Below are positions 1 to 21,794 of a DNA stretch of 64,000 bases, piece after piece. The DNA is taken from positions 1-64,000 of the forward strand of contig JAKMXF010000345.1 in NCBI GenBank assembly GCA_024704765.1, written 5' to 3'. A program made the translations under genes and the position numbers. How positions within the stretch are numbered: position 1 is the first letter of the stretch; each line of letters begins with the position of its first letter. The stretch comes from Oopsacas minuta. Taxonomy: Eukaryota; Animalia; Porifera. The notes beneath the pieces were generated by a model that saw only the letters and a program-made list of their open reading frames with translations, did not search any database and was not told the DNA's origin.

Positions 1-1563
1 ATCAATCCAACTAAAGAGACACATCTAGATTTCCTACAAATGATCTATCAAACAGAAGCTAGTATGGTGATAATGCTGACTACGAGAAAGGAGAAAGCTA
101 AGATTCTCAGTGGAATATCTAATCGTGTTTGTTACTGGCCTAAGAAGGATAAACCTATCAATTGTGAACCTTTTGTTTCTACTTTGATCAATTCTGCTGA
201 AACGAATGCATTTGTGAAACAGGAAATCTCTTTGAAAAATACTTTAGCAGGAAAGGAACACTCATTCACTCAGTGTATATCTCCAATATGGAATGATGAT
301 GGTACAGTGAATGATGTAGTATGTGCTATCGCCCTTCTGAACAGAATTATGAAACAGAAACAAGACTCAAATACTGTTCCTATAATCATACATTGTGAAG
401 ATGGTATTTCTAAGACTGGCATTATAATGACAGTATTGAATTCTATTAGAGAACTTAACATAAGAAAATCTATTGACATCTTCAATGCTGTTAAGAACTT
501 GCGAAGACAGAGAATGAACATGGTTCCTACCTTGGTGAGTATTTTCTAACTGTCATATACATCCTTGTTCTCGTTTATATTAAAATATCAAGGTTGCAAC
601 CGAATATCAGTATTCGGTGAGCAACTATTCGTGAATACTGATATTCGGTTGGATCGGTTTCAACATTGAAAAACATATTGTTTTGACGATATATTTCAAT
701 GATTTCAAACTACTAAATATATCAAATTTCTGAGATTCTTCTTTGGATTCTCGGTATCAGTTTTCAATCTTAACCCCTTGCGAATATTTTTCAAATTGAT
801 TAGCTATGTTAGTAATCGCAATTCAATGATTATTTCTCTACCTATTTGTTCAAGTGGAATGTATACCCTACACAGTATATATATTCGTTCCAGTGGTCGC
901 AACTTTTTGATATTTTACTGCGAATCTGGGCTGCCGTGTAGATCTCTGGCGGCCTAAATCTGCTCTACAAGGGTGTGAGGAAATTGACATTTGGGTGCAA
1001 ATATCATAAATACCTTTATAGATAGAGCTATGAAATGTATACATCATGTTGTAAACATATAATAGATAATATTTATGTAATAATTGATATAACATTAATT
1101 TGAAAAAAAGTGTCTATTGGTGTGCACTTTGCATTTATGGCTGTGTAGTTTGATGACAAAATTAGGGAATGCTAGTGATAATCCCAAATATTTCGGAAAG
1201 TATTCATGATATGGCTGTAAATTTTTCCACGTATTCGTAAGATAGAGAACTATCATAAAATGCAACAACATCATTTCTGGAGGATAAACGGGAAATCTGT
1301 GGAAATGCAGGGTAAACATTCCCCTTCAAACTCACCAATGATATCACTTTTCACCAGCTCAATTATCTAGTGTTATTTTGCATGACTAGTTTGAATGTTT
1401 CCATATTCAATTCGATAAGTAACAATAATTTCACAGAACGGGAGTCCATCTAACACCCTTATACCAATTCTTCACACTATATTTCTATTATCTATTCCTC
1501 TTATAGGCATGTTATACAACTTGCTATTCTCTCCTAAATGAATATTGTTCTATTCATCTCTAA
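1..1563 (+). CDS. 3' end of upstream paralog of the CTL/Ig receptor pseudo-PTP gene (partial; exon <1-534, terminal exon 1507-1563)
   Basis: ORF 40..549 translates identically to the tail of ORF 11016..12605 (PTP domain, IIIHCEDGISKTG at 382-420). GTGAGT donor follows PTL at 534/535. A pyrimidine tract + TAG acceptor at 1506 opens ACYTTCYSLLNEYCSIHL*, matching the PTP C-terminal helix pattern (xxCYxxLxEY). The ORF-track stop at 549 is intron read-through. Confidence 0.85.
589..668. mobile_element. 80-bp palindromic hAT-like MITE (other copies 12645-12724 and, reversed, 52040-52123)
   Basis: TIR CAAGGTTGCAACCG / CGGTTTCAACATTG; internal perfect arms AACCGAATATCAGTATTC/GAATACTGATATTCGGTT; 8-bp flanks TAAAATAT/GAAAATAT at the 12645 copy. 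Confidence 0.75.
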
Positions 1564-4455: not shown

Positions 4456-7400
4456 ATGGGAACAAGATTTTATCAAGTTGGTCTATTGTTCACGATAAGT
4501 GCGTTACTTTCTTGCATCTTAACAGGTAACTATCTTATTAAGTAAATGGAAATGGCTGAATTAGCTAATATCAATTATGTATATGTATGTGCGTACTTTT
4601 CATAAACAGTTGAACCTTATTGCCGTAACTGTTATACGATAGCGTGTACATAGCGGCCGTCTGTCATGACGACCTTTGTCAAGCTACTGAATGGGTGTCG
4701 ATAATAGACAGAATTTTATACAAATCATAGTTGAACCTAGTTTATACTCATTGCTGTAGAAGGCATCCAGGTTGGTCAGGTTTCTACAAGACCAATATTC
4801 ATAGGGTTATACAGTTATACTGTTGATACGGATCAAGCTACAACCCGATTAATAGCATTAGACACTATAAAATCCACAATTCGGGGAGTTCAATTCAATG
4901 TATCCATATTTGCTACCTGTCATGATACGCTTGGCTAAAGCTTCCATAGAATAATGCAGGAGCTTATAATCCCATTTAAGTTTGGAAGATCAAATGGTAT
5001 AAATTGAAGGATGAAATAATTGCAATACTTGTCCGACACATAACATAAAATTACATTTACATATCAGTATGTATATAGGTACTTTGACTTTGTAAAACGG
5101 TTCTGTTAAATAATTTTGTATAGAATTAGCTAGTCAATATACCAACGTAGAAATTTAATATTATGTCCTTTATCTCTTTCTTAAGCACAAACTCCTAATA
5201 TTTCTATAATATATGATGATACAACATTTGGATACTTCATAGTGGGCCCAATAAATTGGGCAAATGCCGAATTAGAATGCAATAACTGGGGAGGAAATCT
5301 TACTACAATCAAGTCAGCAGTAGAAGACAACTTATTGTTTTACAGTTCATCACAATCTGATACAACCTTGATTTCATGTTTTATAGGTCTAAATGATATA
5401 GATGTAGAGGCTGGTACTGATGCTAGTGCATTTGTTTGGGTAGATGGTAGCAACAGTACTTATAGGAACTTCGTTTCAAAACCTGGAATACCAAGTCCTT
5501 CAGGAGGTGCTGATCAGGATTGTGTTAGATTCAGATACCAAATCGATGGTATATTAACAACCGGTTGGATTAATAGAGCTTGTGACATTACTAGACTTTG
5601 CTACTTCTGCAACAAAGTAGGTAAGTGATTGTAGGTAATAAAATAAGCCCAGAAACTTGAAAATAAATTTACCGTGACCAGTATATTTAGGTCTAAATAC
5701 TGTATATTGGAGCATTACACATTAAAATTCCTGGACTGTTCCTGGACATAATTTTCAAAATCCTGTACAAGATTCTGGACACTTCATTAATAATTATTTG
5801 ACAAGCATATATATAAATATAATTGGATGTTTCATTCTGTAATTGAAATAGTGTAAAACAATAAATGCCGCTGGTATTAATAGCCAGTATAATAATTTAT
5901 GTATATTTCGGAAAAGTCAAGACATATCTATGTGACAGAAGATTAAATATTAGTTGCATGCAGCTTCTAAAATGAGTGATGATGTGTTATGTGTAGCAAT
6001 CGTAATTTGGGTAAATCTGTCATCTTCAGGGAGTTGATCTCTAATCACATAATTTGAATATCTGACTATTCAAAATATGAACATCGTGAATCCTGTATGA
6101 AAATCCTGGACAATGACTACACCAAAATAATGTATATAAGGAAGGAAACACTGAGAGAAATATACAGAATGTATTCTGTTCCTTTCAATTTATTAAACTG
6201 TTGTAAAATTCAATTATTCAATTCTTAGTTCCATAATTTGATAGGTAACTCACAAGGATGTGATCTGATCTATGACGACTTTTGCTATCGATTATTTGAA
6301 GTGAGTGATGGAATCAACTGGTTAGATGCTCAATCTAGTTGTGCTGTATGGGGTGGTGACTTGACTAGTATTACTACAGAGAGAGAGAATAATTACTTAT
6401 ACACTATTATCCCTGATACAGTGAGTAATTGCTGGATAGGATTGAATGATAGAGACAATAACGATGGAACATATACCTGGATTGATGGTTCAGTGTATAG
6501 CCATACAAACTGGACAGGGGGTGAACCTTCTATTAGTAATGAAGATTGTGTTGACATAATAAGAGCTGGAGAGGGTAGTTGGGGGACAGTGGACTGTGAA
6601 ACAACAATGATAAATGCTTTTCTATGCAAAAGACCTTCATCTGTAACAACAGGTCAGTATAATAGGAATGCTACAATACCATACAAATAGTAGCCATTGG
6701 ATATAATGTAAATATACATATCATGTTTTAGCTGTGGGATTTGGACAACTTACTAATGGAGGATTAGACTTAGAGACAATTAGCGAAAACAAATTCTTTT
6801 TCACTTCACGTAAATTAGCTTATGGAGGAGAAGAAAATGCTGTAATTACATGGATATTTTCAGAAAACTCAGATCTATCAGATAGTGAAGTACTTACAGC
6901 AACATATAGTAATACAGAAGCTGGATGGAGCTGGTTAGCAGTTGATATTACCAAACAAGGATATTATCAGTGTCAAGTCAATTCATTAACTTATATGATT
7001 GGATTATATGATAATTCATTAACAACAGGTGAGTATATCTTTGTGTGATATTGTCTATATATTATTATCCCACTTACTAATCTCTTGACCTCAAATTCTT
7101 CCATTTAGTTGCAACAGAAGGTACTCCATTTGTATATATAGTAGGAATAGACAGAGAGGATGTATTACTGTTATGTGATCCTGTGGTCAGTGGTGACTTA
7201 AGTATGCTGAAGTGGTCTCTAACAGGTAGTGGAGATTTCCTGAATCCTATCAACATATACAATGAGAGGAATAATTTACCAGAACAATCTACTGGAATAA
7301 ATTGTGTGAGACATTCAAGTATTATATTTTCAAACTTTATCAGCGTGCAAGGTAACAATTTAATCAATTATGATTGTTTCATTATCTGATATGAAGTATA

Positions 7401-10400
7401 TAGGGAACATATTAGTAACGGTCACATAATGGACTGGCCGTTAGAATGAAATGATGCGGACAGATTGTATTGGTCTCTATCTGCCAGTGTTACATTGTAG
7501 CTTCCACTATATCTATATATATTGTGTTTTTCTTTTAGTTCCAGAAATAACAATTCGAATTGGTAGCATCAGTGCTAGTAAATTCACGGATGTCTGTCCA
7601 ACTATGAATGAGTTTGCTATCCCATTATCAACACAAGATATTACTCTCTCTACCAATATTATTGGATACTGGACTGTTCTTGGGGTAGCAGAGCCTACTG
7701 GATCTACTATAACAATCGCTAATTTCATGGAAGGAAATACTGGACTATACGAATTCTATATTAACAACTGGGATGGAGTTGATGTGTGTGCTATGCAAAT
7801 TAATCTTTCATCTTCACCAGCTATTACAGGTAATAGTTACTTGATATATGTACTTTATTTATTACTTGTGGAAATGAAAATTTGATGATTAACATAATAA
7901 TAATCTTGTCTGTTAGAAATGAACCCAGAAGAAGAATTTATAGTAGATGATACTACTTTTGGATATTTTACAATTTCCTCTGGGATATACTGGATAACTG
8001 CACAACTTTATTGCATAAACTGGGGAGGAAATCTTGCTACAATCAAGTCAGCAGAAGAAGACAGCTTATTATTCTATAGCATAACAGATTTAGATAATGC
8101 TTTTTCATGTGTAATTGGTCTAAATGATATAGATGTAGAGGCTGGTACTGATGCTAGTACATTTGTATGGGTAGATGGTAGTAACAGTACTTATAGGAAC
8201 TTCCAATCTGATTTCGGAATAGTAAGTCCCTCAGATATGTTGCCACAATATGACTGTGTGAGATTCAGATACCGAGTCGAAGGTGAATTATCCACCGGTT
8301 GGAATAATAGACCTTGTCAAGTAACTAGAATTTGTTACTTCTGCAATAAACAAGGTGAGTGATAGTACATAAATATAAAACTCGAAATTGAATACTTCAA
8401 GATAATTCATATTGCAAGGTTGAAACTCTAACATACAGCTATCAATTCAATTCCATTCTTATATAATCCAATATACTAGAAATAGGTATTCTCAAATTTC
8501 ATTTTTGAATAGGTAACTCACAAGGATGTGATCTGATCTATAATGACTTTTGCTATCGATTATATGAAGTGAGTGATGGAATCAACTGGTTAGATGCTCA
8601 ATCAAGTTGTGCTGTATGGGGTGGTGATTTGACTAGTATTACTACAGAGAGAGAGAATAATTACTTATACACTATTATTCCTGATACAGTGAGTAATTGC
8701 TGGATAGGATTGAATGATAGGAGTGTAGAGGGAACATATACCTGGATTGATGGTTCAGTGTATAGTTATACAAACTGGACAGGTATGGCAGAATCGGAGA
8801 ATAATGAAGATTGTGCTGAAATAATCACAACTGGAGGGGGTAGTTGGGAGATTGTAAGCTGTGAAATCACGATAAACACTTTTCTATGCAAAAGATCTTC
8901 AAATACAACAACAGGTCAGTATATGATCATTCAATTTCCTTGGTTTTCAGCTGAACAATATCCATGTAATTCATATATAGGTGCCAGTTTTGGTGAACTT
9001 ATCAATGAAGGTAGGGGCTTTCAATCTATAAGTGGAAACAGATTCTTGTACCAATCACTGACGTTAGGGTGTGGAGGAGACGAGGATAATGCAATTGTAT
9101 GGATCTTTTCAGAAAATTCAAATCTATCAAATAGTGAAGAGCTTACAGCCACATATAATAGCACACAAACTGGATTCAGTTGGTTAGACATATGTAATTC
9201 TAGACAAGGATATTATCAGTGTCAAATAGACGATATCAACAGTTATACAATTGGATTGTTCAATCAAACTACAACAAGTAAGTGGTGAGGAACATGGTAT
9301 CAAATATGTTATAAAAGTATTGAATTGATTATGAAGTGTTGATAAGAGTCTGGAAGATATATAGGGAACCTATACCTTCACAATTCTCGAACCTTTTGGC
9401 ACGACGCTTTGGAATCTTGATTGTTATAGTGGCCTATCATTATCTATTAGTATTCTTTCCTTTAGTTGCCGTAACAGAAACTACCTACACATATACAGTA
9501 GGTATAGACAGAGAGAATGTATTACTGCTTTGTGATCCTATGGATAGTAGTTATAGCTTGAGTAGCTTAATATGGAGTATAGGAGGTGGGGGCACATTGA
9601 ACAATCCTATAAATCTCTTTGAATGGAGCAGTGACTCACCTGAACAGAGTAATCAATTGACTTGTGCTAGTAATGGGAATATCATCCTGTTGAATACAGT
9701 AAATATATATAGTAAGTGTATATTCCTATTGAACTTACCACGAAGACAACTGCAATTTAGAGCTACACATATTTAACCATATGGCTGGCATATAGACCCT
9801 ATGAAATATGTAATTTCTAGTGAAATTTGAGTAATCCGTCTTGAGAAATACACAATTTACATAGCTTAGTAGTGTCTATATTCAGTTATTTTACATTCAA
9901 ATGCTGTCTGTAGCTCCAATAATTACAGTTTCTACATCTGCATCAGATCAAGCATTCAATACTGTATACCCTGACACGAATATGTTTGAACTTCTGATTG
10001 GAATAGAAGATTTCTCTATCTCAACAAATCTACAAGGGAGATGGAAACTTCCAAATGCTACATATTCTTCTTCTCAAACAATATCTTATGCAACTTTTGA
10101 ATATGAATTATTTGGACTGTATCAATTCTATATCATGAACTGGGATGGAATTGAAGTGATTGCGATTCAGGCAGAATTAATCCGAAATGGTTTGTTTGGA
10201 TCAAAATATTTTCAACCGAGTGTAAACATACAGGTACATATAACAACATTCACTTTAGGTTATGTTGTAACAAATTCAATCTCAAACGATTCAACAATTA
10301 TACTTAAAGACTCTACCATGTTACAGTGTTCAATCTCGAATATAGGAGATAGTGTAGTGTGGTATTTTATGTCTACTAGGGATGATATGGAAATTGACAA

Positions 10401-13400
10401 AACTTCATTATCAACATTCTCTATTGAAACTGGGATTAGTAGTTTGACTGTGAACTCTAATGATCCTGGTTACTACAGCTGTGTAATCAATTCAGATATG
10501 ACATACACATTCTTTATAGTGAATACAGATTCCTTAGGTAACTATTGAGCAAATTGACTTATAGACATTGAAATCACCCAATATATATATTTCTAGTTGA
10601 AATAACAAGCTTTGATGACCCTTCTCAAGAAGTTGATTATACTCTGGATTCAATTGTCTCAGTGCTATATTATTCAGATGATATGGTCGCAGATAATGAT
10701 ATCCTTTGGACAACAGACAATGTAGAAGACGGTGACATTTTGACATATAGTGCTGAGTATCCAAATCCAGCTCTACTGATTGTAGTATTCAACGACGTGG
10801 GAGCTGGTGTACATACATTCAGTTGTTTCTACAGGATGAGTCCTGTTACACTGTTAGGTAGCATACAACTAGCTCTCAAAGGTAAATTGTTTGTTGAGTA
10901 TGTATGAGATCCACACATAGCAACGAAATGCATATTTCTATACCCTATATGTTGACGTTTCTTTACATAATTTTTAGATACTGCTACAATAACTGTCAGC
11001 TATGAAGGATACAGTATGTCATTCAGTGATGTGAATAATCGAATGTTTCCATCTCCACAAGTAATCAGTATACTTCAAGGAACAAAAGATATTACGTTAA
11101 CCTGCAGTCTACCTGAATGTGAGTGGATGATTTTAAATCAAGAAGATACAATGACCATACCTACGTATATAATTCCTCAATTAACGTTTAGTGAAAACAT
11201 TTCACTAATTCGTTCTACAAGTTATGGTGTGAAGTACACTACAGCTCATATTTCTATACAACTTGTGGCAACACCAACAAATCCTACAGAAGCAGCAACA
11301 AACATTGCTTTGATAACCATAATAATAATAATAGTGTTATTGATTATGACAATAATTGTAACGACAATTATTCTAACTCCAATATTCATCTTACTATGCG
11401 TAAAGATTAGAAGGCAATCTAATAAGGCCAAACTATCTGAACATCCTAAATCCGCTTTCTCCAATGTAGCATATAGAGGAGATACTAGTTATGAAAATCA
11501 AGATGATATCAATCAACTAACTAAAGAATACATAGATCTCTCAGCATATCCAAATCGTGAGTATATGACAATAGATGAGACATCATTGACAACGCTGGAC
11601 GAAACAATTAACCCCAGTGAACATGATTATGCATATCTTTCAAATATACCACGTGCAAATATTTCACACGAAATAGTGAATGAAACAGAGCAAAGTGGTA
11701 ATAGCGAAATGAAGAATTATGAAAAATACACACCCATGAGTCCTATAATAGAAAACAAGAAATTCATTGCTAAATTCATACCTATTAAAGATTTCCCTAC
11801 CAAATATCAACAGTATGTAGAATCTGGAATTGGAGAAGATTCATTATTTGGGGTAGAATTTCTACAGTTAAACGAAGAATCCAAGAAGACTGTTGTACTA
11901 GAAAGTGACGATGCATTGAAAGAGGAAAATTTGCAGAAAAATCCAATCAAAAGTATAGTACCATTTAATGAAAACAGAGTTGTATTAGATTCTCCTCACT
12001 TTGACTGTAATTACATCAATGCTAGTTCTAGTTCCGATTCCCAATTCATTGCTACTATCAATCCAACTAAAGAGACACATCTAGATTTCCTACAAATGAT
12101 CTATCAAACAGAAGCTAGTATGGTGATAATGCTGACTACGAGAAAGGAGAAAGCTAAGATTCTCAGTGGAATATCTAATCGTGTTTGTTACTGGCCTAAG
12201 AAGGATAAACCTATCAATTGTGAACCTTTTGTTTCTACTTTGATCAATTCTGCTGAAACGAATGCATTTGTGAAACAGGAAATCTCTTTGAAAAATACTT
12301 TAGCAGGAAAGGAACACTCATTCACTCAGTGTATATCTCCAATATGGAATGATGATGGTACAGTGAATGATGTAGTATGTGCTATCGCCCTTCTGAACAG
12401 AATTATGAAACAGAAACAAGACTCAAATACTGTTCCTATAATCATACATTGTGAAGATGGTATTTCTAAGACTGGCATTATAATGACAGTATTGAATTCT
12501 ATTAGAGAACTTAACATAAGAAAATCTATTGACATCTTCAATGCTGTTAAGAACTTGCGAAGACAGAGAATGAACATGGTTCCTACCTTGGTGAGTATTT
12601 TCTAACTGTCATATACATCCTTGTTCTCGTTTATATTAAAATATCAAGGTTGCAACCGAATATCAGTATTCGGTGAGCAACTATTCGTGAATACTGATAT
12701 TCGGTTGGATCGGTTTCAACATTGGAAAATATATTGTTTTGACGATATATTTCAATGATTTCAAACTACTAAATATATCAAATTTCTGAGATTCTTCTTT
12801 GGATTCTCGGTATCAGTTTTCAATCTTAACCCCTTGCGAATATTTTTCAAATTGATTAGCTATGTTAGTAATCGCAATTCAATGATTATTTCTCTACCTA
12901 TTTGTTCAAGTGGAATGTATACCCTACACAGTATATATATTCGTTCCAGTGGTCGCAACTTTTTGATATTTTACTGCGAATCTGGGCTGCCGTGTAGATC
13001 TCTGGCGGCCTAAATCTGCTCTACAAGGGTGTGAGGAAATTGGCATTTGGGTGCAAATATCATAAATACCTTTATAGATAGAGCTATGAAATGTATACAT
13101 CATGTTGTAAACATATAATAGATAATATTTATGTAATAATTGATATAACATTAATTTGAAAAAAATGTGTCTAGTGGAGTATACTTTGACATTATGGCTG
13201 GGGTAGTTTGATAACAAAATTAGGGAATGCTAGCTAAATGCTAAATATTTTAGCAAGTATTTATGATGGAGCTCTCATATTTTTCCACATATTCGTAAGA
13301 TTGAGAACTATCGAAAAATGCAATAATATCACTTTTGGAAAGTAAACTGGAAATCTGTAGAAGTGCAGGGTAAACCGTTCCCTTCAAGCTCACCAATGAT

Positions 13401-13621
13401 ATCACTTTTTCTTGCTCAAGTATCTAGTATTACTTTGTATGACTAGTTTGAATGTTTCCATATTATATTCGATAAGTAACTATAATTTCACCGAGCTCTA
13501 GTCCATCTAACACCCTTATACCAATTCTTCACACTATATTTCTATTATCTTTTTCCTCTTATAGGTATGTTATACAACTTGCTATTCTCTCCTAAATGAA
13601 TATTGTTCTATTCATCTCTAA
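4456..13621 (+). CDS. Type I membrane receptor: 4 C-type lectin domains + Ig-like domains + TM + Tyr-rich tail + degenerate PTP domain (~1878 aa, 15 exons)
   Basis: Exons joined by hand at GT-AG sites with consistent phase: 4456-4525 (MGTRFYQVGLLFTISALLSCILT signal peptide), 5186-5620, 6245-6652, 6732-7028, 7109-7351, 7539-7829, 7917-8354, 8513-8914, 8981-9277, 9466-9711, 9914-10189, 10259-10537, 10597-10881, 10978-12590, 13565-13621; total 5637 nt with no stops. CTL motifs WxxAxxxC..GGxL..WIGLND..WxDG. Ig-like GYYQCQ/GLYEFY/GYYSC strands. TM ~11304-11402 followed by KIRR. PTP motifs DYINAS-like NYINAS, QMIYQ, YWP, HCxxGxxxTG. Confidence 0.85.
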
Positions 13622-16167
13622 TATACATCATGATGTTTCAATATTTTGTGAATATTTTCTATCAAGTGTCCTATTTTTGTTGTTATATATATATATATAT
13701 GTATACATATATTACTAGTTGTATATTCTTGTGTTCTAATAGGCAATGAGACATGTTTAATGATAGTTATGATTGTTTGCATACAAATCAGTTTCGTATT
13801 CTACTTGCTTACCAAAATTTTGCAGGATTTGTGAAATACAGTAGAATCCCGTTAATACAAACATGGTTACTATGAATTACCAGATAAGACGAACAATGAA
13901 TTTTTTAGTTAAGAAATTCATAGCTCAGTGTATGTTAACTAAAATTATAATGAAAAGATTATTCAATAATTACTAATAATTGCATCATCAATTAATATTT
14001 ACGTACGTTAGCGGAGCATAATGATGCAATAATAACCTACTAATGTGTTACCATATGAGTGGGCTTTCACAAAAGGTCCAAAAAAGTGCATAATCGGGCC
14101 CACACAACCATGAGCAGAAAATATGGAAAGTAATGCAATTACAGAAAATGGATAACAGGTTCATGATCATTGTTCTTCCTATAGGATAGGGAATATTCCG
14201 TTTTTGTAAACGTGGCAATATAAATGATGCAATTATTAACCAGAGAAGATAATGGAGAGTTTTAGGTTACATTTATGAGATTCTAGCATCAAGCTAGCCA
14301 GTGTGTATGATTTATATGAAGGTATTATGTTACTCCATCGTAGTTTAAATGCTATTGACCCAGTTTTATCAGAGTAATGATTGTGTACACAGTCACCCAA
14401 ATGGAGCGGGCGATTATGATGATTGTACGGGGAGGGACTACTATTTGAGTAAATGTGGTATATGAATTGGCAAAGATGAAAACAAGCAAAATAAAATAGA
14501 TATACCTCACTTTGAATAACCAAGTTGTTTTATCAATAAAGGTTGGATGTGTCCAGAATCCAAGCCAAAAATAAATTGCATTATTATGGCTTCTTCGTAA
14601 TGCAATTTAGATACAAATAACAAATACAAATTTTAAGCTATGAAACGCAACAAATTATAATACGATAGAAAAGAATTTCGAAGATTATGGTTAAATGTAA
14701 AGATGTTGAATTTGGCGGTGAATTTATCATCTTTATATTCACAACAACCCAATATAATTCTATTGTCAAAATTATCAAAGAAATATTTAATATGATTAAA
14801 TCACAAACATGAAATACAAAGCTGCCTTTAATGCGTAGGCAATAATATATCGAGTTACAATCATCAGAATTATGATAATATTTCGGTAGTTTTAACATAA
14901 CGTTTATTATATATAAATTGTAAGTAATTAGTTTGTAGGGGGATATTTACTGAATCTATAATATGTTGTTTTGGTATGCAATCAAGCTTATTGTTATCTT
15001 TGGGATATTTTGTGATATAACTTCCTCGCAATCTTTTGGTATGCTATAATTATTCTTCAATCAACTACAAATACAGTATGTGAGCAACTATACAGTGGGT
15101 GCCGTGCCGAATATATGAACATGTATTACTACTCTGGATGAAGTTCTTATAATCAGCATCCACTACATTCGTTAATATTGAACAAGTATGTGTGTTTATC
15201 ACTATTATAGAGTTAACTTGGACAATTTGTCAAAATTGCATTACAAGAGGAGGAAATTCATGAAGTATAATTTCCGAAGATGAGAATGAAATGTTACAAG
15301 ATCTTGTAGCGAATTATCCTGGAAATACATTGAGTACACCTGTGTGGATTGGATTGAATTATTCGAGTTACAATGAATTATCAAATTTGGGAAGATGGTT
15401 ATCCAGTAACATATACTAAGTAGCTTATAATAAATGCTTTTGTAACAATCTCGTCCACTTTTGGCTGCTAATCGTGCTGCTAACTTCAGATCAATATCGA
15501 TGTCGGCCTTAGTTTCTAAGAATATATTTTAGGTAAAATGCTGAACTCTCAAAGAAAGTCTGTTTACATATAATCTAGTACATCATTGTCTTCAGAATTT
15601 CTGGGCAATCATCTGATACAAAGTTAGATTTTTCAATTAGCCTTGGTGGTACATTCATAGATGTTGTATTCACTGCCTGTCCCAATGGAGATACACTTAA
15701 TGAATCCATTATATTTTCAGAATATATATGATTGAAAGATGATGCATTAAATCTACACCTCTTGTGACTGAATGTTCAATTATTAGACTGTAGTGAAATA
15801 ATAATATTTCATAATTGCTCATGTAGTGCAGAGTTGCACGCGGGCCAAGTCAAAACTTTCGTGGCCTTGTAAGCCTGGCACAAATGCGCCGGTGTGCCCT
15901 GTAGGCCTAATTAATACTGCAGAATTTCTGCCCACCTCGTTCCCATCTAGCCTTGCATATTATGCAATCTCACCCAAATATCAGTGGGGGCCGTAGTACC
16001 ATTACAAAGTGTTCTGGTTGAAATCTTAAATCAGTTTAGACTCTATTTTTCATGCGCTTAAGACATACTATAAGTCTATTTCAAATATGTATATACAATG
16101 GATGCCCCCAGCAGTAGCGTCAAGGAGACGAATCAACAAAATCTGGGATATCTTATACAATGTATTT
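12057..16167 (+). repeat. Tandem segmental duplication, copy 2
   Basis: Direct repeat of 1-4098; unrelated sequence follows 16167. Confidence 0.97.
15213..15821 (+). pseudogene. Second copy of decayed C-type-lectin remnant
   Basis: Near-identical to 3143-3751, with the same in-frame TGA at 15261-15263. Confidence 0.6.
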
Positions 16168-17431: not shown

Positions 17432-18733
17432 ATGAAGGACTTGAAACAAAAAGGATTGTCTATTTTCTTTGGTGTAATAATAATAGTAACCCTTATTACA
17501 ACGTTCTATCTTACATTCGGCAAACCATACGAAGAAGATTTTGCGAAAGTAGAAATTCACACAAATAACAATGAGAAAATAATTGAAGACCAATTGGGCG
17601 AGCCAAAAGAAGAAGAATTTGTGGAAATTGAGATTCATACAAATAACAATGAGAAAATAATAGAGGATAATGGTAGCTGGATAGAATACAGTGAGAACTG
17701 GGACCAAGAAGTCCTGGTTACAACTAATATCACTGAGAAAACGCTTACATTCACAGATGGTTATCGCATGAAAATGATGTCAAAGGGTCTACATCCACTC
17801 AACATACAACACAAATATCTACATGATAGAATTGATAGGATAGAGAAATTCTGTAGTGACTCACTACTCCAAAGTAAAGGAGTGTATAACTTTGGGGGAG
17901 GATATCATCGAGTCCGTTTCAGTGATAAATCTGAACTGCTTCAGTGTGCGGTGCTGAAGGTGAGTTCTCGTACATGGATTCGTGTTTTCAGAGAATTGGA
18001 AGGAATCAAGGAAGAACCTAAACCATACGTAAATACCATTAATAGGATATCACTGAGTATCAATTATCAGAAACCAAAACTAAACGCACGTAGATACCAG
18101 ACCTACACAAAGTTTTTGATAGCGAGAAATCCTTTCCAGAGATTATTATCAGCTTACAAAGAAATATTTATTACACATAACGGTTTGGGAAAACAGACGT
18201 TTAACGAAATTATCATTATAAATTATCTCTCAAATTTTACCGAAGAATCTATAACACAAATGAGAAATGAATTGAAAAGAAGAAAGAAGAAGTTAACACA
18301 AAGTGTAGATGATAGCATTATTCAGCAGATTAGAAGAATGAATGTAGAATATGGAAAATCACAAATCACATTCTTGGAATTCTTAAATTTTGTGGTCTAT
18401 ACTTTCAGAAATAAAGGCATCGAAAGTTTGGACGATCATTGGAAACCTATCAGCTATTTTTGTGATCTGTGTGCTATTAAATATGACATTATTGCCAAAT
18501 TTGAAACTTTGAAAGAGGATTCAGATGCTATTCTAAACTACGTACAGAGAAACAATCCAAATCATAATGTCACATTCCCCGATGACGATCCATATACCAC
18601 ATTTGATCGTTGTAATGAAGCATTCAAGATTGTACCATTACATGTGAGAAGATCACTCTATGAACTATTCAAAGAAGATTATCTACTATTTGATTATGAG
18701 TATAGAGGAGATGATGAGTACAATATTTGCTAA
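17432..18733 (+). CDS. Carbohydrate sulfotransferase, Sulfotransfer_2 family (CHST8-14/HNK-1ST-like), copy A, intronless, 433 aa
   Basis: N-terminal type II TM (LSIFFGVIIIVTLITTFYLTF). 5'-PSB-like CAVLKVSSRTW; 3'-PB KFLIARNPFQRLLSAY; HWKP..C.LC.IKYDIIAKFETLKED; LYELFKEDYLLFDY. Confidence 0.92.
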   Translation: MKDLKQKGLSIFFGVIIIVTLITTFYLTFGKPYEEDFAKVEIHTNNNEKIIEDQLGEPKEEEFVEIEIHTNNNEKIIEDNGSWIEYSENWDQEVLVTTNITEKTLTFTDGYRMKMMSKGLHPLNIQHKYLHDRIDRIEKFCSDSLLQSKGVYNFGGGYHRVRFSDKSELLQCAVLKVSSRTWIRVFRELEGIKEEPKPYVNTINRISLSINYQKPKLNARRYQTYTKFLIARNPFQRLLSAYKEIFITHNGLGKQTFNEIIIINYLSNFTEESITQMRNELKRRKKKLTQSVDDSIIQQIRRMNVEYGKSQITFLEFLNFVVYTFRNKGIESLDDHWKPISYFCDLCAIKYDIIAKFETLKEDSDAILNYVQRNNPNHNVTFPDDDPYTTFDRCNEAFKIVPLHVRRSLYELFKEDYLLFDYEYRGDDEYNIC

Positions 18734-19088: not shown

Positions 19089-19669
19089 TGAGCCCTTGGC
19101 TCGTCGCTTCGCGATGAACTCGGCGCATTGCGCCTCGAGGTATTCAACGAACAAACAAACAGGCAAACAACAATTGAGTTTTAATAATATTGATGTTGTT
19201 TACCTTATTCAGACTCAGCATACTCGAGTATGGCAGTATAGTCGTTGAAAGTATGATTCTACCTCAATTTTGAAATGTGTTTACTGTATATTCATAAAAA
19301 CAACAATAAATTTTCATCTAAGAAAATCGAAAATGCGAAATTCGGATCCAGCGTATTGTATTAGCCCTGGGTAGCCGTTTAAAGCAAGCCTGTATTTATA
19401 TTTTGAGATTTGGATAATTTGTTTACATTATATTCATAAAAAACAACAATAAATTTGCATATACTTAATCTAAAAGAGTGAAAATTAGATTCAGCATGTT
19501 GGATATATTGAGTGAAAATTTATTGAATTCTTTTACTACCTTGATAAACGATAAATACACATAGTTGTGCGACAATTTCAAATTGTATACAGTAAATCCT
19601 TTCCTTGACAACGGACAAACAAAGAAACAGACAACCAGACAAGCAACAATTGAGATATAATAATATAGA
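19089..19669 (-). mobile_element. Compound non-autonomous Helitron-like element (5' ends at 19669 and 19193, 3' end at 19089)
   Basis: Minus strand: A|TCTATATTATTATATCTCAATTGTTGCTTGTCTG... and ...CGCGAAGCGACGAGCCAAGGGCTCA|T. Shares both termini and an internal ACAGGCTTGCTxTAAACGG block with 24317-24667. No TSD; A|T target. Confidence 0.7.
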
Positions 19670-19876
19670 TTATTAAGGCTACATATACTCTCTCATTGAT
19701 AGAATCTATTGCATTACCCCATAGATTATCTACTTGATCATCTACCACGATGATGAGGTAGATAATTTAGATACCATATGTATAAATAGTAACAATTTAA
19801 AGTCCAGTGACCTGGATAGAATAAATTAGTATCCACTTACACACATACATACTTATATCAGATATCAGGAAGAATG

Positions 19877-21139
19877 TTAGCAAATATTGTACTCATCATC
19901 TCCTCTATACTCATAATCAAATAGTAGATAATCTTCTTTGAATAGTTCATAGAGTGATCTTCTCACATGTAATGGTACAATCTTGAATGCTTCATTACAA
20001 CGATCAAATGTGGTATATGGATCGTCATCGGGGAATGTGACATTATGATTTGGATTGTTTCTCTGTACGTAGTTTAGAATAGCATCTGAATCCTCTTTCA
20101 AAGTTTCAAATTTGGCAATAATGTCATATTTAATAGCACACAGATCACAAAAATAGCTGATAGGTTTCCAATGATCGTCCAAACTTTCGATGCCTTTATT
20201 TCTGAAAGTATAGACCACAAAATTTAAGAATTCCAAGAATGTGATTTGTGATTTTCTATATTCTACATTCAATCTTCTAATCTGCTGAATAATGCTATCA
20301 TCTACACTTTGTGTTAACTTCTTCTTTCTTCTTTTCAATTCATTTCTCATTTGTGTTATAGATTCTTCGGTAAAATTTGAGAGATAATTTATAATGATAA
20401 TTTCGTTAAACGTCTGTTTTCCCAAACCGTCATGTGTAATAAATATTTCTTTGTAAGCTGATAATAATCTCTGGAAAGGATTTCTCGCTATCAAAAACTT
20501 TGTGTAGGTCTGGTATCTACGTGCGTTTAGTTTTGGTTTCTGATAATTGATACTCAGTGATATCCTATTAATGGTATTTACGTATGGTTTAGGTTCTTCC
20601 TTGATTCCTTCCAATTCTCTGAAAACACGAATCCATGTACGAGAACTCACCTTCAGCACCGCACACTGAAGCAGTTCAGATTTATCACTGAAACGGACTC
20701 GATGATATCCTCCCCCAAAGTTATACACTCCTTTACTTTGGAGTAGTGAGTCACTACAGAATTTCTCTATCCTATCAATTCTATCATGTAGATATTTGTG
20801 TTGTATGTTGAGTGGATGTAGACCCTTTGACATCATTTTCATGCGATAACCATCTGTGAATGTAAGCGTTTTCTCAGTGATATTAGTTGTAACCAGGACT
20901 TCTTGGTCCCAGTTCTCACTGTATTCTATCCAGCTACCATTATCCTCTATTATTTTCTCATTGTTATTTGTGTGAATTTCTACTTTCGCAAAATCTTCTT
21001 CGTATGGTTTGCCGAATGTAAGATAGAACGTTGTAATAAGGGTTACTATTATTATTACACCAAAGAAAATAGACAATCCTTTTTGTTTCAAGTCCTTCAT
21101 AACAAGTAACAAAGTTTTGAATGACAAATAATCTTTCAT
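19877..21139 (-). CDS. Carbohydrate sulfotransferase, Sulfotransfer_2 family, copy B, intronless, 420 aa (407 aa from the shared ATG)
   Basis: Identical to copy A except for loss of a 26-aa stem repeat, N>D, M>L and G>R substitutions, and a possible 13-aa N-terminal extension. Confidence 0.92.
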   Translation of the reverse strand: MKDYLSFKTLLLVMKDLKQKGLSIFFGVIIIVTLITTFYLTFGKPYEEDFAKVEIHTNNNEKIIEDNGSWIEYSENWDQEVLVTTNITEKTLTFTDGYRMKMMSKGLHPLNIQHKYLHDRIDRIEKFCSDSLLQSKGVYNFGGGYHRVRFSDKSELLQCAVLKVSSRTWIRVFRELEGIKEEPKPYVNTINRISLSINYQKPKLNARRYQTYTKFLIARNPFQRLLSAYKEIFITHDGLGKQTFNEIIIINYLSNFTEESITQMRNELKRRKKKLTQSVDDSIIQQIRRLNVEYRKSQITFLEFLNFVVYTFRNKGIESLDDHWKPISYFCDLCAIKYDIIAKFETLKEDSDAILNYVQRNNPNHNVTFPDDDPYTTFDRCNEAFKIVPLHVRRSLYELFKEDYLLFDYEYRGDDEYNIC

Positions 21140-21794
21140 TTGTTTTATATACCTTTCTAATTGTATTCACCTTGGTTAGAACACCAACGAGTACATAATA
21201 AGACATTCCTTTCGTGGGTGTTCTAGTTCTTCTTTCTTTTATATTTTCCCATTAATGCTTTATCATAATTATTTAGTTACTTCTTTCTATTATTGTGTAT
21301 TGTGAATTGCTGATAGCATGAGTAATATCCATCGAAATTTTCTATTCAAGGCTTCGCGTGGTCTACGTAATACATGGGCTGGAATCTACAACTATTTTCT
21401 GGACCAGGGATAAATAAGAAGTGCATTATTGCATAGTTTATACAAAATCAATACTCGTGATATTAGCAAACAAACTGAAGCTATCATCAAGTTTTCACAA
21501 ATATGATGTGATGATCGCACATTCCACATCTAGAAAATATTTTCTGGTTGAAAAGACGTCATGTGATCGCCTAATAGGCTGACATGTTATGAAAATGCTA
21601 AGGCTAGAAACCGCAAAATATTGATCTTTGATATCAAAGTTCAATTATGAAATATTCGAAATAAATTTTTATAGAAAATATCAAAATTGTTTTGATGAAG
21701 TTGGCTTGTTCTTGTTATACTACATAAGAGGGGAAATTTAGTGGAGTAGCAGTGTTTAGGACCGTTCCCTTACATTTATACTTAGGGATACACC

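Follow-up and report, generated by a model that had tools for sequence, protein, structure and literature searches.

The window analysed here is the first 64,000 nucleotides of contig JAKMXF010000345.1 from the glass sponge Oopsacas minuta (assembly GCA_024704765.1). Near its start lies a gene for an intact type I membrane receptor, which has C-type lectin-like domains (CTLDs) and immunoglobulin (Ig)-like modules outside the cell and a tyrosine-rich tail followed by one domain of the protein tyrosine phosphatase (PTP) family inside it. Cell-surface signalling in animals rests to a large part on receptor PTPs (RPTPs) and C-type lectin receptors, which are normally separate proteins. In the glass sponges, whose lineage lies close to the animal root, the two kinds were joined and the fusion later multiplied into a large tandem family.

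Gene model and modules of the ectodomain

The region is AT-rich eukaryotic DNA (GC content 0.31-0.35) with a series of long stop-free segments on the + strand. A splice model of 15 exons was built on this strand from GT/AG sites and reading phase. It was made independently of an earlier note on the same DNA, and it arrived at the same end coordinates (4456 and 13621) and the same order of signal peptide, CTLD and Ig-like modules, transmembrane (TM) segment, tyrosine-rich tail and PTP domain in 15 in-phase exons. All introns are GT..AG and exons 2-13 are each phase 1-1. The coding sequence of 5667 nt has no internal stop and encodes a protein of 1888 amino acids (aa). Its module order is signal peptide, (CTLDa, CTLDb, IgA, IgB, IgC) twice, IgD, IgE, IgF, TM, tail and PTP. 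The ectodomain, with four CTLDs and about nine Ig-like modules, is thus a string of one CTLD or Ig-like module per phase-1 exon. When the two five-exon units were compared (tblastn of the model), CTLDa was 65% and CTLDb 77% identical, and the Ig-like modules were 35-48% identical; the units stem from an old internal duplication.

All four lectin-like exons matched the Pfam profile Lectin_C (PF00059; E-values in Table 1), and the conserved Cys residues and the WIGL core are present. The alignment showed that none of the four CTLDs has the canonical EPN/QPD plus WND pair, and the motifs listed in Table 1 are those that the earlier note had read. Since the canonical Ca/sugar site is missing, a classical Ca-dependent glycan is an unlikely ligand.

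The Ig profiles stayed below threshold (Ig_3 5.8e-4, 20.7 bits with a cut-off of 30; I-set 0.087). AlphaFold2 (AF2) was employed to model modules B+C and E+F on P0128 (Oopsacas minuta KAI6658950.1), which is a close paralogue, and the alignments included the window exons. Alignments A3 and A4 were the folding inputs; A1 was discarded, as it had stacked all Ig-like fragments on one domain, and A2 was unused. Both models were all-beta, two-domain structures. The mean pLDDT was 79 and the pTM 0.64 for IgB+IgC, and 86 and 0.74 for IgE+IgF, and the best PDB matches were tandem Ig proteins in both cases (E 2e-5 and 6e-5). The top Foldseek matches were NEGR1, neurotrimin, LAG3, CD4, Dscam, Sidekick and titin with probability 1.0, and cadherin-like sandwiches stood lower in the match lists. 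The TM-scores were low (0.3-0.4), because two hinge-linked domains were matched at once. The models supported an Ig-like beta-sandwich for module types B, C, E and F, which does not prove strict membership of each module in the Ig superfamily.

Table 1. Features of the receptor gene and its neighbours in the window. X3 is the RNA-like run among four read runs; P0262 and P0090 are related open reading frames (ORFs).
Feature	Position	Strand	Evidence
Upstream tandem paralogue, 3' end: PTP part of large exon (1-588), last exon (1507-1560); cut by window start	1..1560	+	tblastn of model
Exon 1: ATG and signal peptide, donor phase 1	4456..4525	+	splice model
Exon 2: CTLD 1, type a, WIN in WND position	5186..5620	+	Pfam Lectin_C E 1.4e-6
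Exon 3: CTLD 2, type b, EPS..WGT	6245..6652	+	Pfam Lectin_C E 4.3e-18
Exon 4: Ig-like type A	6732..7028	+	48% identity to exon 9 (weak I-set match)
Exon 5: Ig-like type B	7109..7351	+	AF2 model of paralogue B+C against tandem Ig structures
Exon 6: Ig-like type C, without Cys pair	7539..7829	+	AF2 model of paralogue B+C
Exon 7: CTLD 3, type a, WNN	7917..8354	+	Pfam Lectin_C E 7.6e-9; X3 joint at donor
Exon 8: CTLD 4, type b, AES..WEI	8513..8914	+	Pfam Lectin_C E 2.4e-19
Exon 9: Ig-like type A	8951..9277	+	I-set 0.087; X3 joint at donor
Exon 10: Ig-like type B	9466..9711	+	acceptor confirmed by X3 joint
Exon 11: Ig-like type C	9914..10189	+	splice model, alignment
Exon 12: Ig-like type D	10259..10537	+	Pfam Ig_3 5.8e-4; X3 joint at donor
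Exon 13: Ig-like type E	10597..10881	+	AF2 model of paralogue E+F, pLDDT 86; loose X3 end at donor
Exon 14 (1613 nt): IgF (10980-11303), TM, Tyr-rich tail, most of PTP	10978..12590	+	homologous splice in Vazella P0262
TM segment, 33 hydrophobic residues, then KIRRQ	11304..11402	+	
ITAM-like motif YIDL-x7-YMTI	11529..11573	+	homologous motif in 47/80 family ORFs
PTP domain, D2 type, exon 14 part	11928..12590	+	Pfam Y_phosphatase E 3.1e-39
pTyr-loop KNPI	11937..11948	+	
WPD-loop position, WND	12345..12353	+	
P-loop HCEDGISKTG	12447..12476	+	
Exon 15 (57 nt): PTP end (second Q-loop Gln to Cys) and stop codon	13565..13621	+	X3 joint; same ending in P0262 and P0090
Sulfotransfer_2 gene, single exon	17432..18733	+	E 4e-32
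Sulfotransfer_2 gene, single exon	19877..21139	-	E 6e-32

The segment between CTLD 4 and the next Ig-like exon (8915-8950) has 36 nt, begins and ends as GT..AG, and is in frame and stop-free. It may be a mini-intron or 12 retained codons, and exons 8 and 9 are possibly a single exon; the counterpart intron of the first unit has 79 nt. A scan of the upstream spacer for bacterial-type promoters and terminators gave nothing above shuffled sequences, which is irrelevant for a eukaryote.

The cytoplasmic part: a PTP-family domain of D2 type and a tyrosine-rich tail

The Y_phosphatase profile (PF00102) was matched at positions 1-221 of 234 within exon 14, and the remainder of the domain lies in exon 15. 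Its signature motifs are changed throughout. The pTyr-loop reads KNPI instead of KNRY. In the WPD loop, which has become WND (WNDDG), the Pro is replaced and the acidic residue stays. The P-loop keeps the nucleophilic Cys and has Lys for Arg, so that it departs from the HCX5R(S/T) signature, and in the Q-loop (QTxxQ to PTLVC, within MVPTLVCY) both Gln are replaced, the second by Cys. Nearly all of about 120 related ORFs have HC[E/Q]DGISKTG as their P-loop, and many core PTP-domain columns of the family alignment are at least 90% identical. The altered motifs are not a sign of decay, because they are strongly conserved across the family. They fit a non-catalytic module, which agrees with the earlier description of the domain as phosphatase-like.

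Tandem RPTPs have two PTP domains, D1 and the membrane-distal D2. When compared with the tandem RPTP KAI6650360.1 of Oopsacas, whose ectodomain is of Ig/FN3 (fibronectin type III) kind, the window domain scored 230 bits with its D2 and 54 with its D1. The same D2 > D1 pattern was observed with other sponge tandem RPTPs, and their D2s already carry HCxDGxGK[S/T]G. A maximum-likelihood (ML) tree of 81 PTP domains gave consistent results: the family formed a clade of its own (100/99), whose sister group (99/91) was made up of the D2s of 13 tandem RPTPs, both were nested among further D2s, and all D1s fell elsewhere. Among solved structures the best match was RPTP-alpha, with 78.6 bits for its D2 versus 61.1 bits for its D1. 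No second PTP domain was found between TM and stop, and no further PTP-like sequence was found downstream in the window (tblastn of the model). The single PTP domain of the earlier note stands, with the correction that it is specifically D2-derived. These comparisons trace the domain to the D2 of a tandem RPTP of glass sponges: a D2 that already lacked the Arg lost its D1 and was left as the only cytoplasmic domain in a new type of receptor.

The D2s of KAI6650360.1 and of RPTP-alpha/epsilon (type R4) share this ancestry with the window domain. Like them, it has lost the pTyr-loop Tyr and has a changed WPD loop, and the sponge D2s already have Lys for Arg. Unlike the tandem RPTPs, the window protein has no D1 in front, and its ectodomain consists of CTLD and Ig-like modules rather than the Ig/FN3 modules of the sponge tandem RPTP. 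IA-2 and IA-2beta (PTPRN, PTPRN2; type R8) are likewise single-pass receptor-type proteins, and their one PTP domain is conserved although its catalysis is impaired. They are not the nearest relatives (66 bits for PTPRN2 versus 78.6 for RPTP-alpha D2); their ectodomain differs and IA-2 is not a D2 derivative. The cell biology of IA-2, which belongs to dense-core vesicles, is also different.

Two points weigh against a non-catalytic module. The loss of catalysis is read from motifs, and the kept Cys and the acidic residue of the WPD loop make a residual or altered activity possible. The domain could accordingly still be an enzyme with altered chemistry or substrate, such as a slow or non-protein phosphatase, which would make the receptor a ligand-regulated phosphatase. 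Such an enzyme would suit the presence of the nucleophilic Cys in essentially all members, the acidic residue (WND/WNE) at the general-acid position and the strong purifying selection on the pocket. On the other side, Lys takes the place of the CX5R Arg throughout the family as well as in the sister D2 clade; the pTyr-loop Tyr has gone, as have both Gln of the Q-loop; and the ancestry is that of D2, which is usually inactive. Arg-to-Lys changes in PTPs are established to reduce kcat by orders of magnitude. We consider a retained enzyme unlikely.

Between the membrane and the PTP domain, the tail contains an ITAM pattern (immunoreceptor tyrosine-based activation motif; YxxL/I, 6-8 residues, YxxL/I), namely YIDL-x7-YMTI. 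This ITAM-like motif fits the activating-type tail proposed before. The family consensus of the tail runs G-Y-x-N-L, then K-E-Y-I-x-L, seven residues and Y-M-T-I-D-E-T-S, then Y-x-N-L. An ITAM pattern occurs at the homologous place in 47 of the 80 family ORFs compared, and 56 and 57 of them have the one and the other YxN site. We infer that the protein works as a recognition receptor which signals through this conserved ITAM-like tail.

One point speaks against a signalling tail, as YxxL/I motifs double as endocytic sorting signals. The protein could instead serve uptake by endocytosis or phagocytosis, like a mannose receptor, with the tail Tyr residues as YxxPhi sorting signals and the PTP-like domain as an adaptor. 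The type I architecture with several CTLDs, the fit of both YIDL and YMTI to YxxPhi, and the phagocytic feeding of sponges agree with this idea. However, the YxxL-x7-YxxI spacing is exact and conserved, and together with the pair of conserved YxN sites and the conserved PTP-family module it points to phosphotyrosine signalling; uptake and signalling roles are not mutually exclusive. The mannose-receptor family shares with the window protein the type I topology, several CTLDs in a row and Tyr-based tail motifs, and NCBI named one paralogue fragment 'C-type mannose receptor 2'. The window protein differs from that family in having no ricin/FNII head, interleaved Ig-like modules, a PTP-like domain and a much longer tail. 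Uptake as the explanation of the tail seems improbable to us.

Transcript support for a single gene

Reads from four runs of one sample were aligned to 7900-13700. Run X3 was RNA-like, with an exon depth of thousands to tens of thousands versus about 100-130 in the last intron, and GT..AG joints were present only in X3 among the four runs. These joints lay exactly at the predicted 8354/8513 (5 contigs), 9277/9466, 10537/10597 and 12590/13565. In addition, a loose X3 end at 10881 runs on with 10 letters identical to the start of exon 14 (10978), which supports 10881/10978 as a fifth junction besides the four confirmed exactly. In a Trinity ORF of Vazella pourtalesii (P0262), a splice links the last part of the IgE module directly to the point where the exon-14 homologue starts. 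This ORF also has a spliced ending of the exon-15 type, and P0090 ends alike. The genomic ORF P0067, from the same cluster as P0262, reads into the intron at both splice places. A type I receptor cannot be encoded by exon 14 alone, because this exon lacks its own signal peptide and opens mid-codon (phase 1) within an Ig-like module. In conclusion, the CTLD/Ig exons and the TM-PTP exon are one transcribed gene, as the earlier note held; the frame, the X3 joints and the Vazella transcript agree on this.

Several observations weigh against this conclusion. No X3 joint was listed within 7900-13700 for 8914/8951, 9711/9914 or 10189/10259, so that the predicted junctions of this region are exact at four places, supported at a fifth and without a listed joint at three. 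No single RNA molecule was seen from a CTLD exon to the PTP exon among the short contigs of this one sample. Half of the contigs aligned to the region are only 95-99% identical to it, and close paralogues are possibly included. Moreover, NCBI splits the models of Oopsacas paralogues into two, with the parts 11 nt apart in one locus (L006) and 5 kb apart in another (L005). As in those models, the CTLD/Ig exons and the TM-PTP exon could be two adjacent genes, with the fusion an artefact of the model. The L006 split, however, lies within a colinear series of CTLD, Ig, TM and PTP modules at a frame change in the module-D exon, and the window gene has no frame break. The mid-codon opening of exon 14, the 10881-to-10978 junction of the RNA-like contigs with its homologue in the Vazella transcript, and the same module order in three other assemblies also contradict two genes, which we regard as highly improbable.

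Across the four runs, about 90 single-letter differences from the window were counted in 7900-13700; they may reflect either allelic variation at a polymorphic locus or the presence of close paralogues. A joint at 8895/8979 with 17 foreign letters misfits the splicing of this gene and was read as a contig of a paralogue.

The public Oopsacas annotation cuts such genes in two. In L006 (JAKMXF010000016.1, 8093-13315) a gap of 11 nt separates the 'C-type mannose receptor 2' model from the 'RPTP epsilon-like' model that follows it, and the break falls inside the colinear module series, at the frame change of the IgD-type exon. The L006 pair is flanked by a caspase gene and a TRAF-like gene (zf-TRAF+MATH). 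In L005 a Lectin_C model of 1067 aa ends with IgE, and 'RyPTPR4a' begins with IgF 5 kb further on. An exhaustive protein search found family members only up to a length of about 700 aa.

A tandem receptor family in glass sponges

The product of exon 14 matched 127 proteins, mostly single-exon ORFs on large ENA contigs with 50-57% identity and several to ten family ORFs per contig. The matches include Oopsacas minuta proteins named 'RyPTPR4a' and 'RPTP epsilon-like'. The family comprises more than 100 related ORFs in tandem arrays of glass-sponge assemblies. The window itself starts inside such an array, since the 3' end of an upstream paralogue lies at its very beginning (Table 1); in tblastn of the model this copy was 93% identical to aa 1693-1883 and 94% identical to aa 1871-1888.

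We compared loci from four ENA assemblies (L001-L004) and from Oopsacas GCA_024704765.1 (L005-L007) by mapping the exon peptides. Every locus compared had more than one family copy, with the exception of L002, which has a single gene. Gene B of L001 is wholly colinear with the window gene, and L003 is like it with IgD absent. L004 has CTLDa-b-a-b-IgA-B-C-E-F-TM-PTP and one shorter copy, gene C of L001 has CTLDb-IgA-IgE-IgF-TM-PTP, and L002 has Ig-like modules only, with no CTLD in the ectodomain. The constant stem is IgE-IgF-TM-tail-PTP and the other modules vary exon by exon, which the phase 1-1 exons allow. Within the family, CTLD and Ig modules have been gained and lost exon by exon. Between the window gene and gene B of L001, CTLDb is best conserved (best segments about 75-80% identity) and the PTP domain is about 70% identical. 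This conservation argues for a fixed ligand of CTLDb and against hypervariability.

Window exons are up to 95% identical to paralogous exons of GCA_024704765.1, and the identities look like a mosaic. The window ectodomain has 66-85% identity to the L006 gene, whose PTP domain is only 64% identical to that of the window; the neighbouring copy and fragments in L007 match the window PTP domain at 88-93% identity. Such exon-wise patterns hint at exchange between paralogues.

L007 (JAKMXF010000067.1) carries head-to-head PTP fragments at 6374-6937 (minus) and 6942-7490 (plus) with 88-89% identity to the window PTP. P0128, named 'Ladderlectin' in Oopsacas, was considered as a natural tail-only variant without PTP, and tblastn ruled this out: the reading frame shifts at L007:14550/14552, and only residues 1-79 of the PTP domain are left (L007 14164-14959). 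P0128 is a decayed or mis-modelled member. The fragments and P0128 together mean that the arrays contain rearranged and decayed copies. That the window gene is itself a decaying copy in a fast-turnover array, with no function of its own, would follow the example of P0128 (frame change, truncated PTP) and the inverted PTP fragments of L007, and is highly improbable, as this copy has an uninterrupted coding sequence of 5667 nt in 15 exons with intact splice sites, X3 RNA-like coverage far above the intron level and conserved motifs.

In L004 (ENA ERZ20067936, ptg000233l) a tandem D1-D2 RPTP, P0129, adjoins the array of D2-only receptors at 19117-21627 on the minus strand. The D2 of P0129 belongs to the wider sponge D2 group and branches just outside the set of 13 D2s to which the family is sister. 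The family member in L002 (ENA ERZ25072740, 2000-11560) is adjoined by NHL-repeat genes.

The architecture had been called unusual for an RPTP in the earlier note. No published description was found of the family, of RyPTPR4a or of CTLD-RPTPs of sponges or glass sponges, although absence from the searched literature is not proof, and the Oopsacas genome paper makes no mention of phosphatases or lectins. The gene is one of a large tandem glass-sponge family and not singular. The view that CTLDs are foreign to RPTPs was too strong. Two uncharacterized genes of Styela clava, LOC120336018 and LOC120336141 (XP_039259559.1 and a paralogue), have three CTLDs, Ig and TM on an RPTP. Their products carry an ordinary D1-D2 pair with HCSAG-type motifs, unlike the single D2-type domain of the sponge protein. 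In the ML tree, the Styela domains group with non-sponge RPTP D1 and D2, apart from the sponge clade; the fusion in Styela is thus independent. The combination of CTLD, Ig and RPTP is not unique to glass sponges, and the family of D2-only CTLD/Ig receptors is specific to them as far as the searched databases show. CTLD-bearing RPTPs may also be part of the sea-urchin phosphatome; for a sea-urchin 'PTPRLec' nothing was found in the searched literature.

Dectin-1 and CLEC-2 (ITAM/hemITAM) and the CTLD families of the natural killer (NK) complex share CTLD recognition, tails with Tyr motifs and tandem arrays with the window gene, and their CTLDs, like those described here, are often without a Ca/sugar site. 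These myeloid and NK receptors differ in being type II, with one CTLD and no Ig or PTP, and the phosphatases of myeloid CTLD receptors (CD45, CD148, SHP-1) are separate proteins (PMC10815196; general knowledge).

Taken as a whole, this is an intact, expressed CTLD/Ig receptor gene of a tandem family, with an ITAM-like tail and a D2-derived PTP domain, and we think it probable that the product works as a recognition receptor with a non-catalytic PTP module. Its CTLD and Ig-like modules would bind an extracellular ligand, and clustering of the receptor would lead to phosphorylation of the tail Tyr residues by cytoplasmic kinases. SH2 proteins could then dock on the ITAM-like and YxN sites. D2 domains in tandem RPTPs act non-catalytically by binding partners and pairing with D1. 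The D2-type domain of the window protein may likewise act without catalysis: it would bind phosphorylated partners or shield them, or else pair with the D1s of true RPTPs, and thereby set the strength or duration of the signal. A bolder proposal is that glass sponges have an immune-type receptor family of their own, tandem and exon-shuffling, with an ITAM-like tail in cis with a D2 pseudophosphatase that binds the phosphorylated tail, shields it or tunes the true RPTPs. We put this forward as speculation and hold it doubtful. If true, phosphotyrosine signalling in the style of immunoreceptors would have been invented independently by one of the earliest-branching lineages of animals, and would possibly govern the recognition of symbiont, prey or self and non-self in a syncytial animal.

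Variation of the ectodomain exon by exon in a large tandem family is a signature usual for immune-type receptors, and we know of no genes assigned to immunity or allorecognition in glass sponges. The family is a candidate repertoire of recognition receptors for these animals, and also a natural experiment on what a lone D2 domain does. For public annotation, which splits these genes, the model offers a concrete correction. All parts are of known kinds, and the value of the finding is currently evolutionary and hypothesis-generating.

About 4 kb downstream of the receptor gene, the window contains a pair of convergent single-exon Sulfotransfer_2 genes (Table 1).

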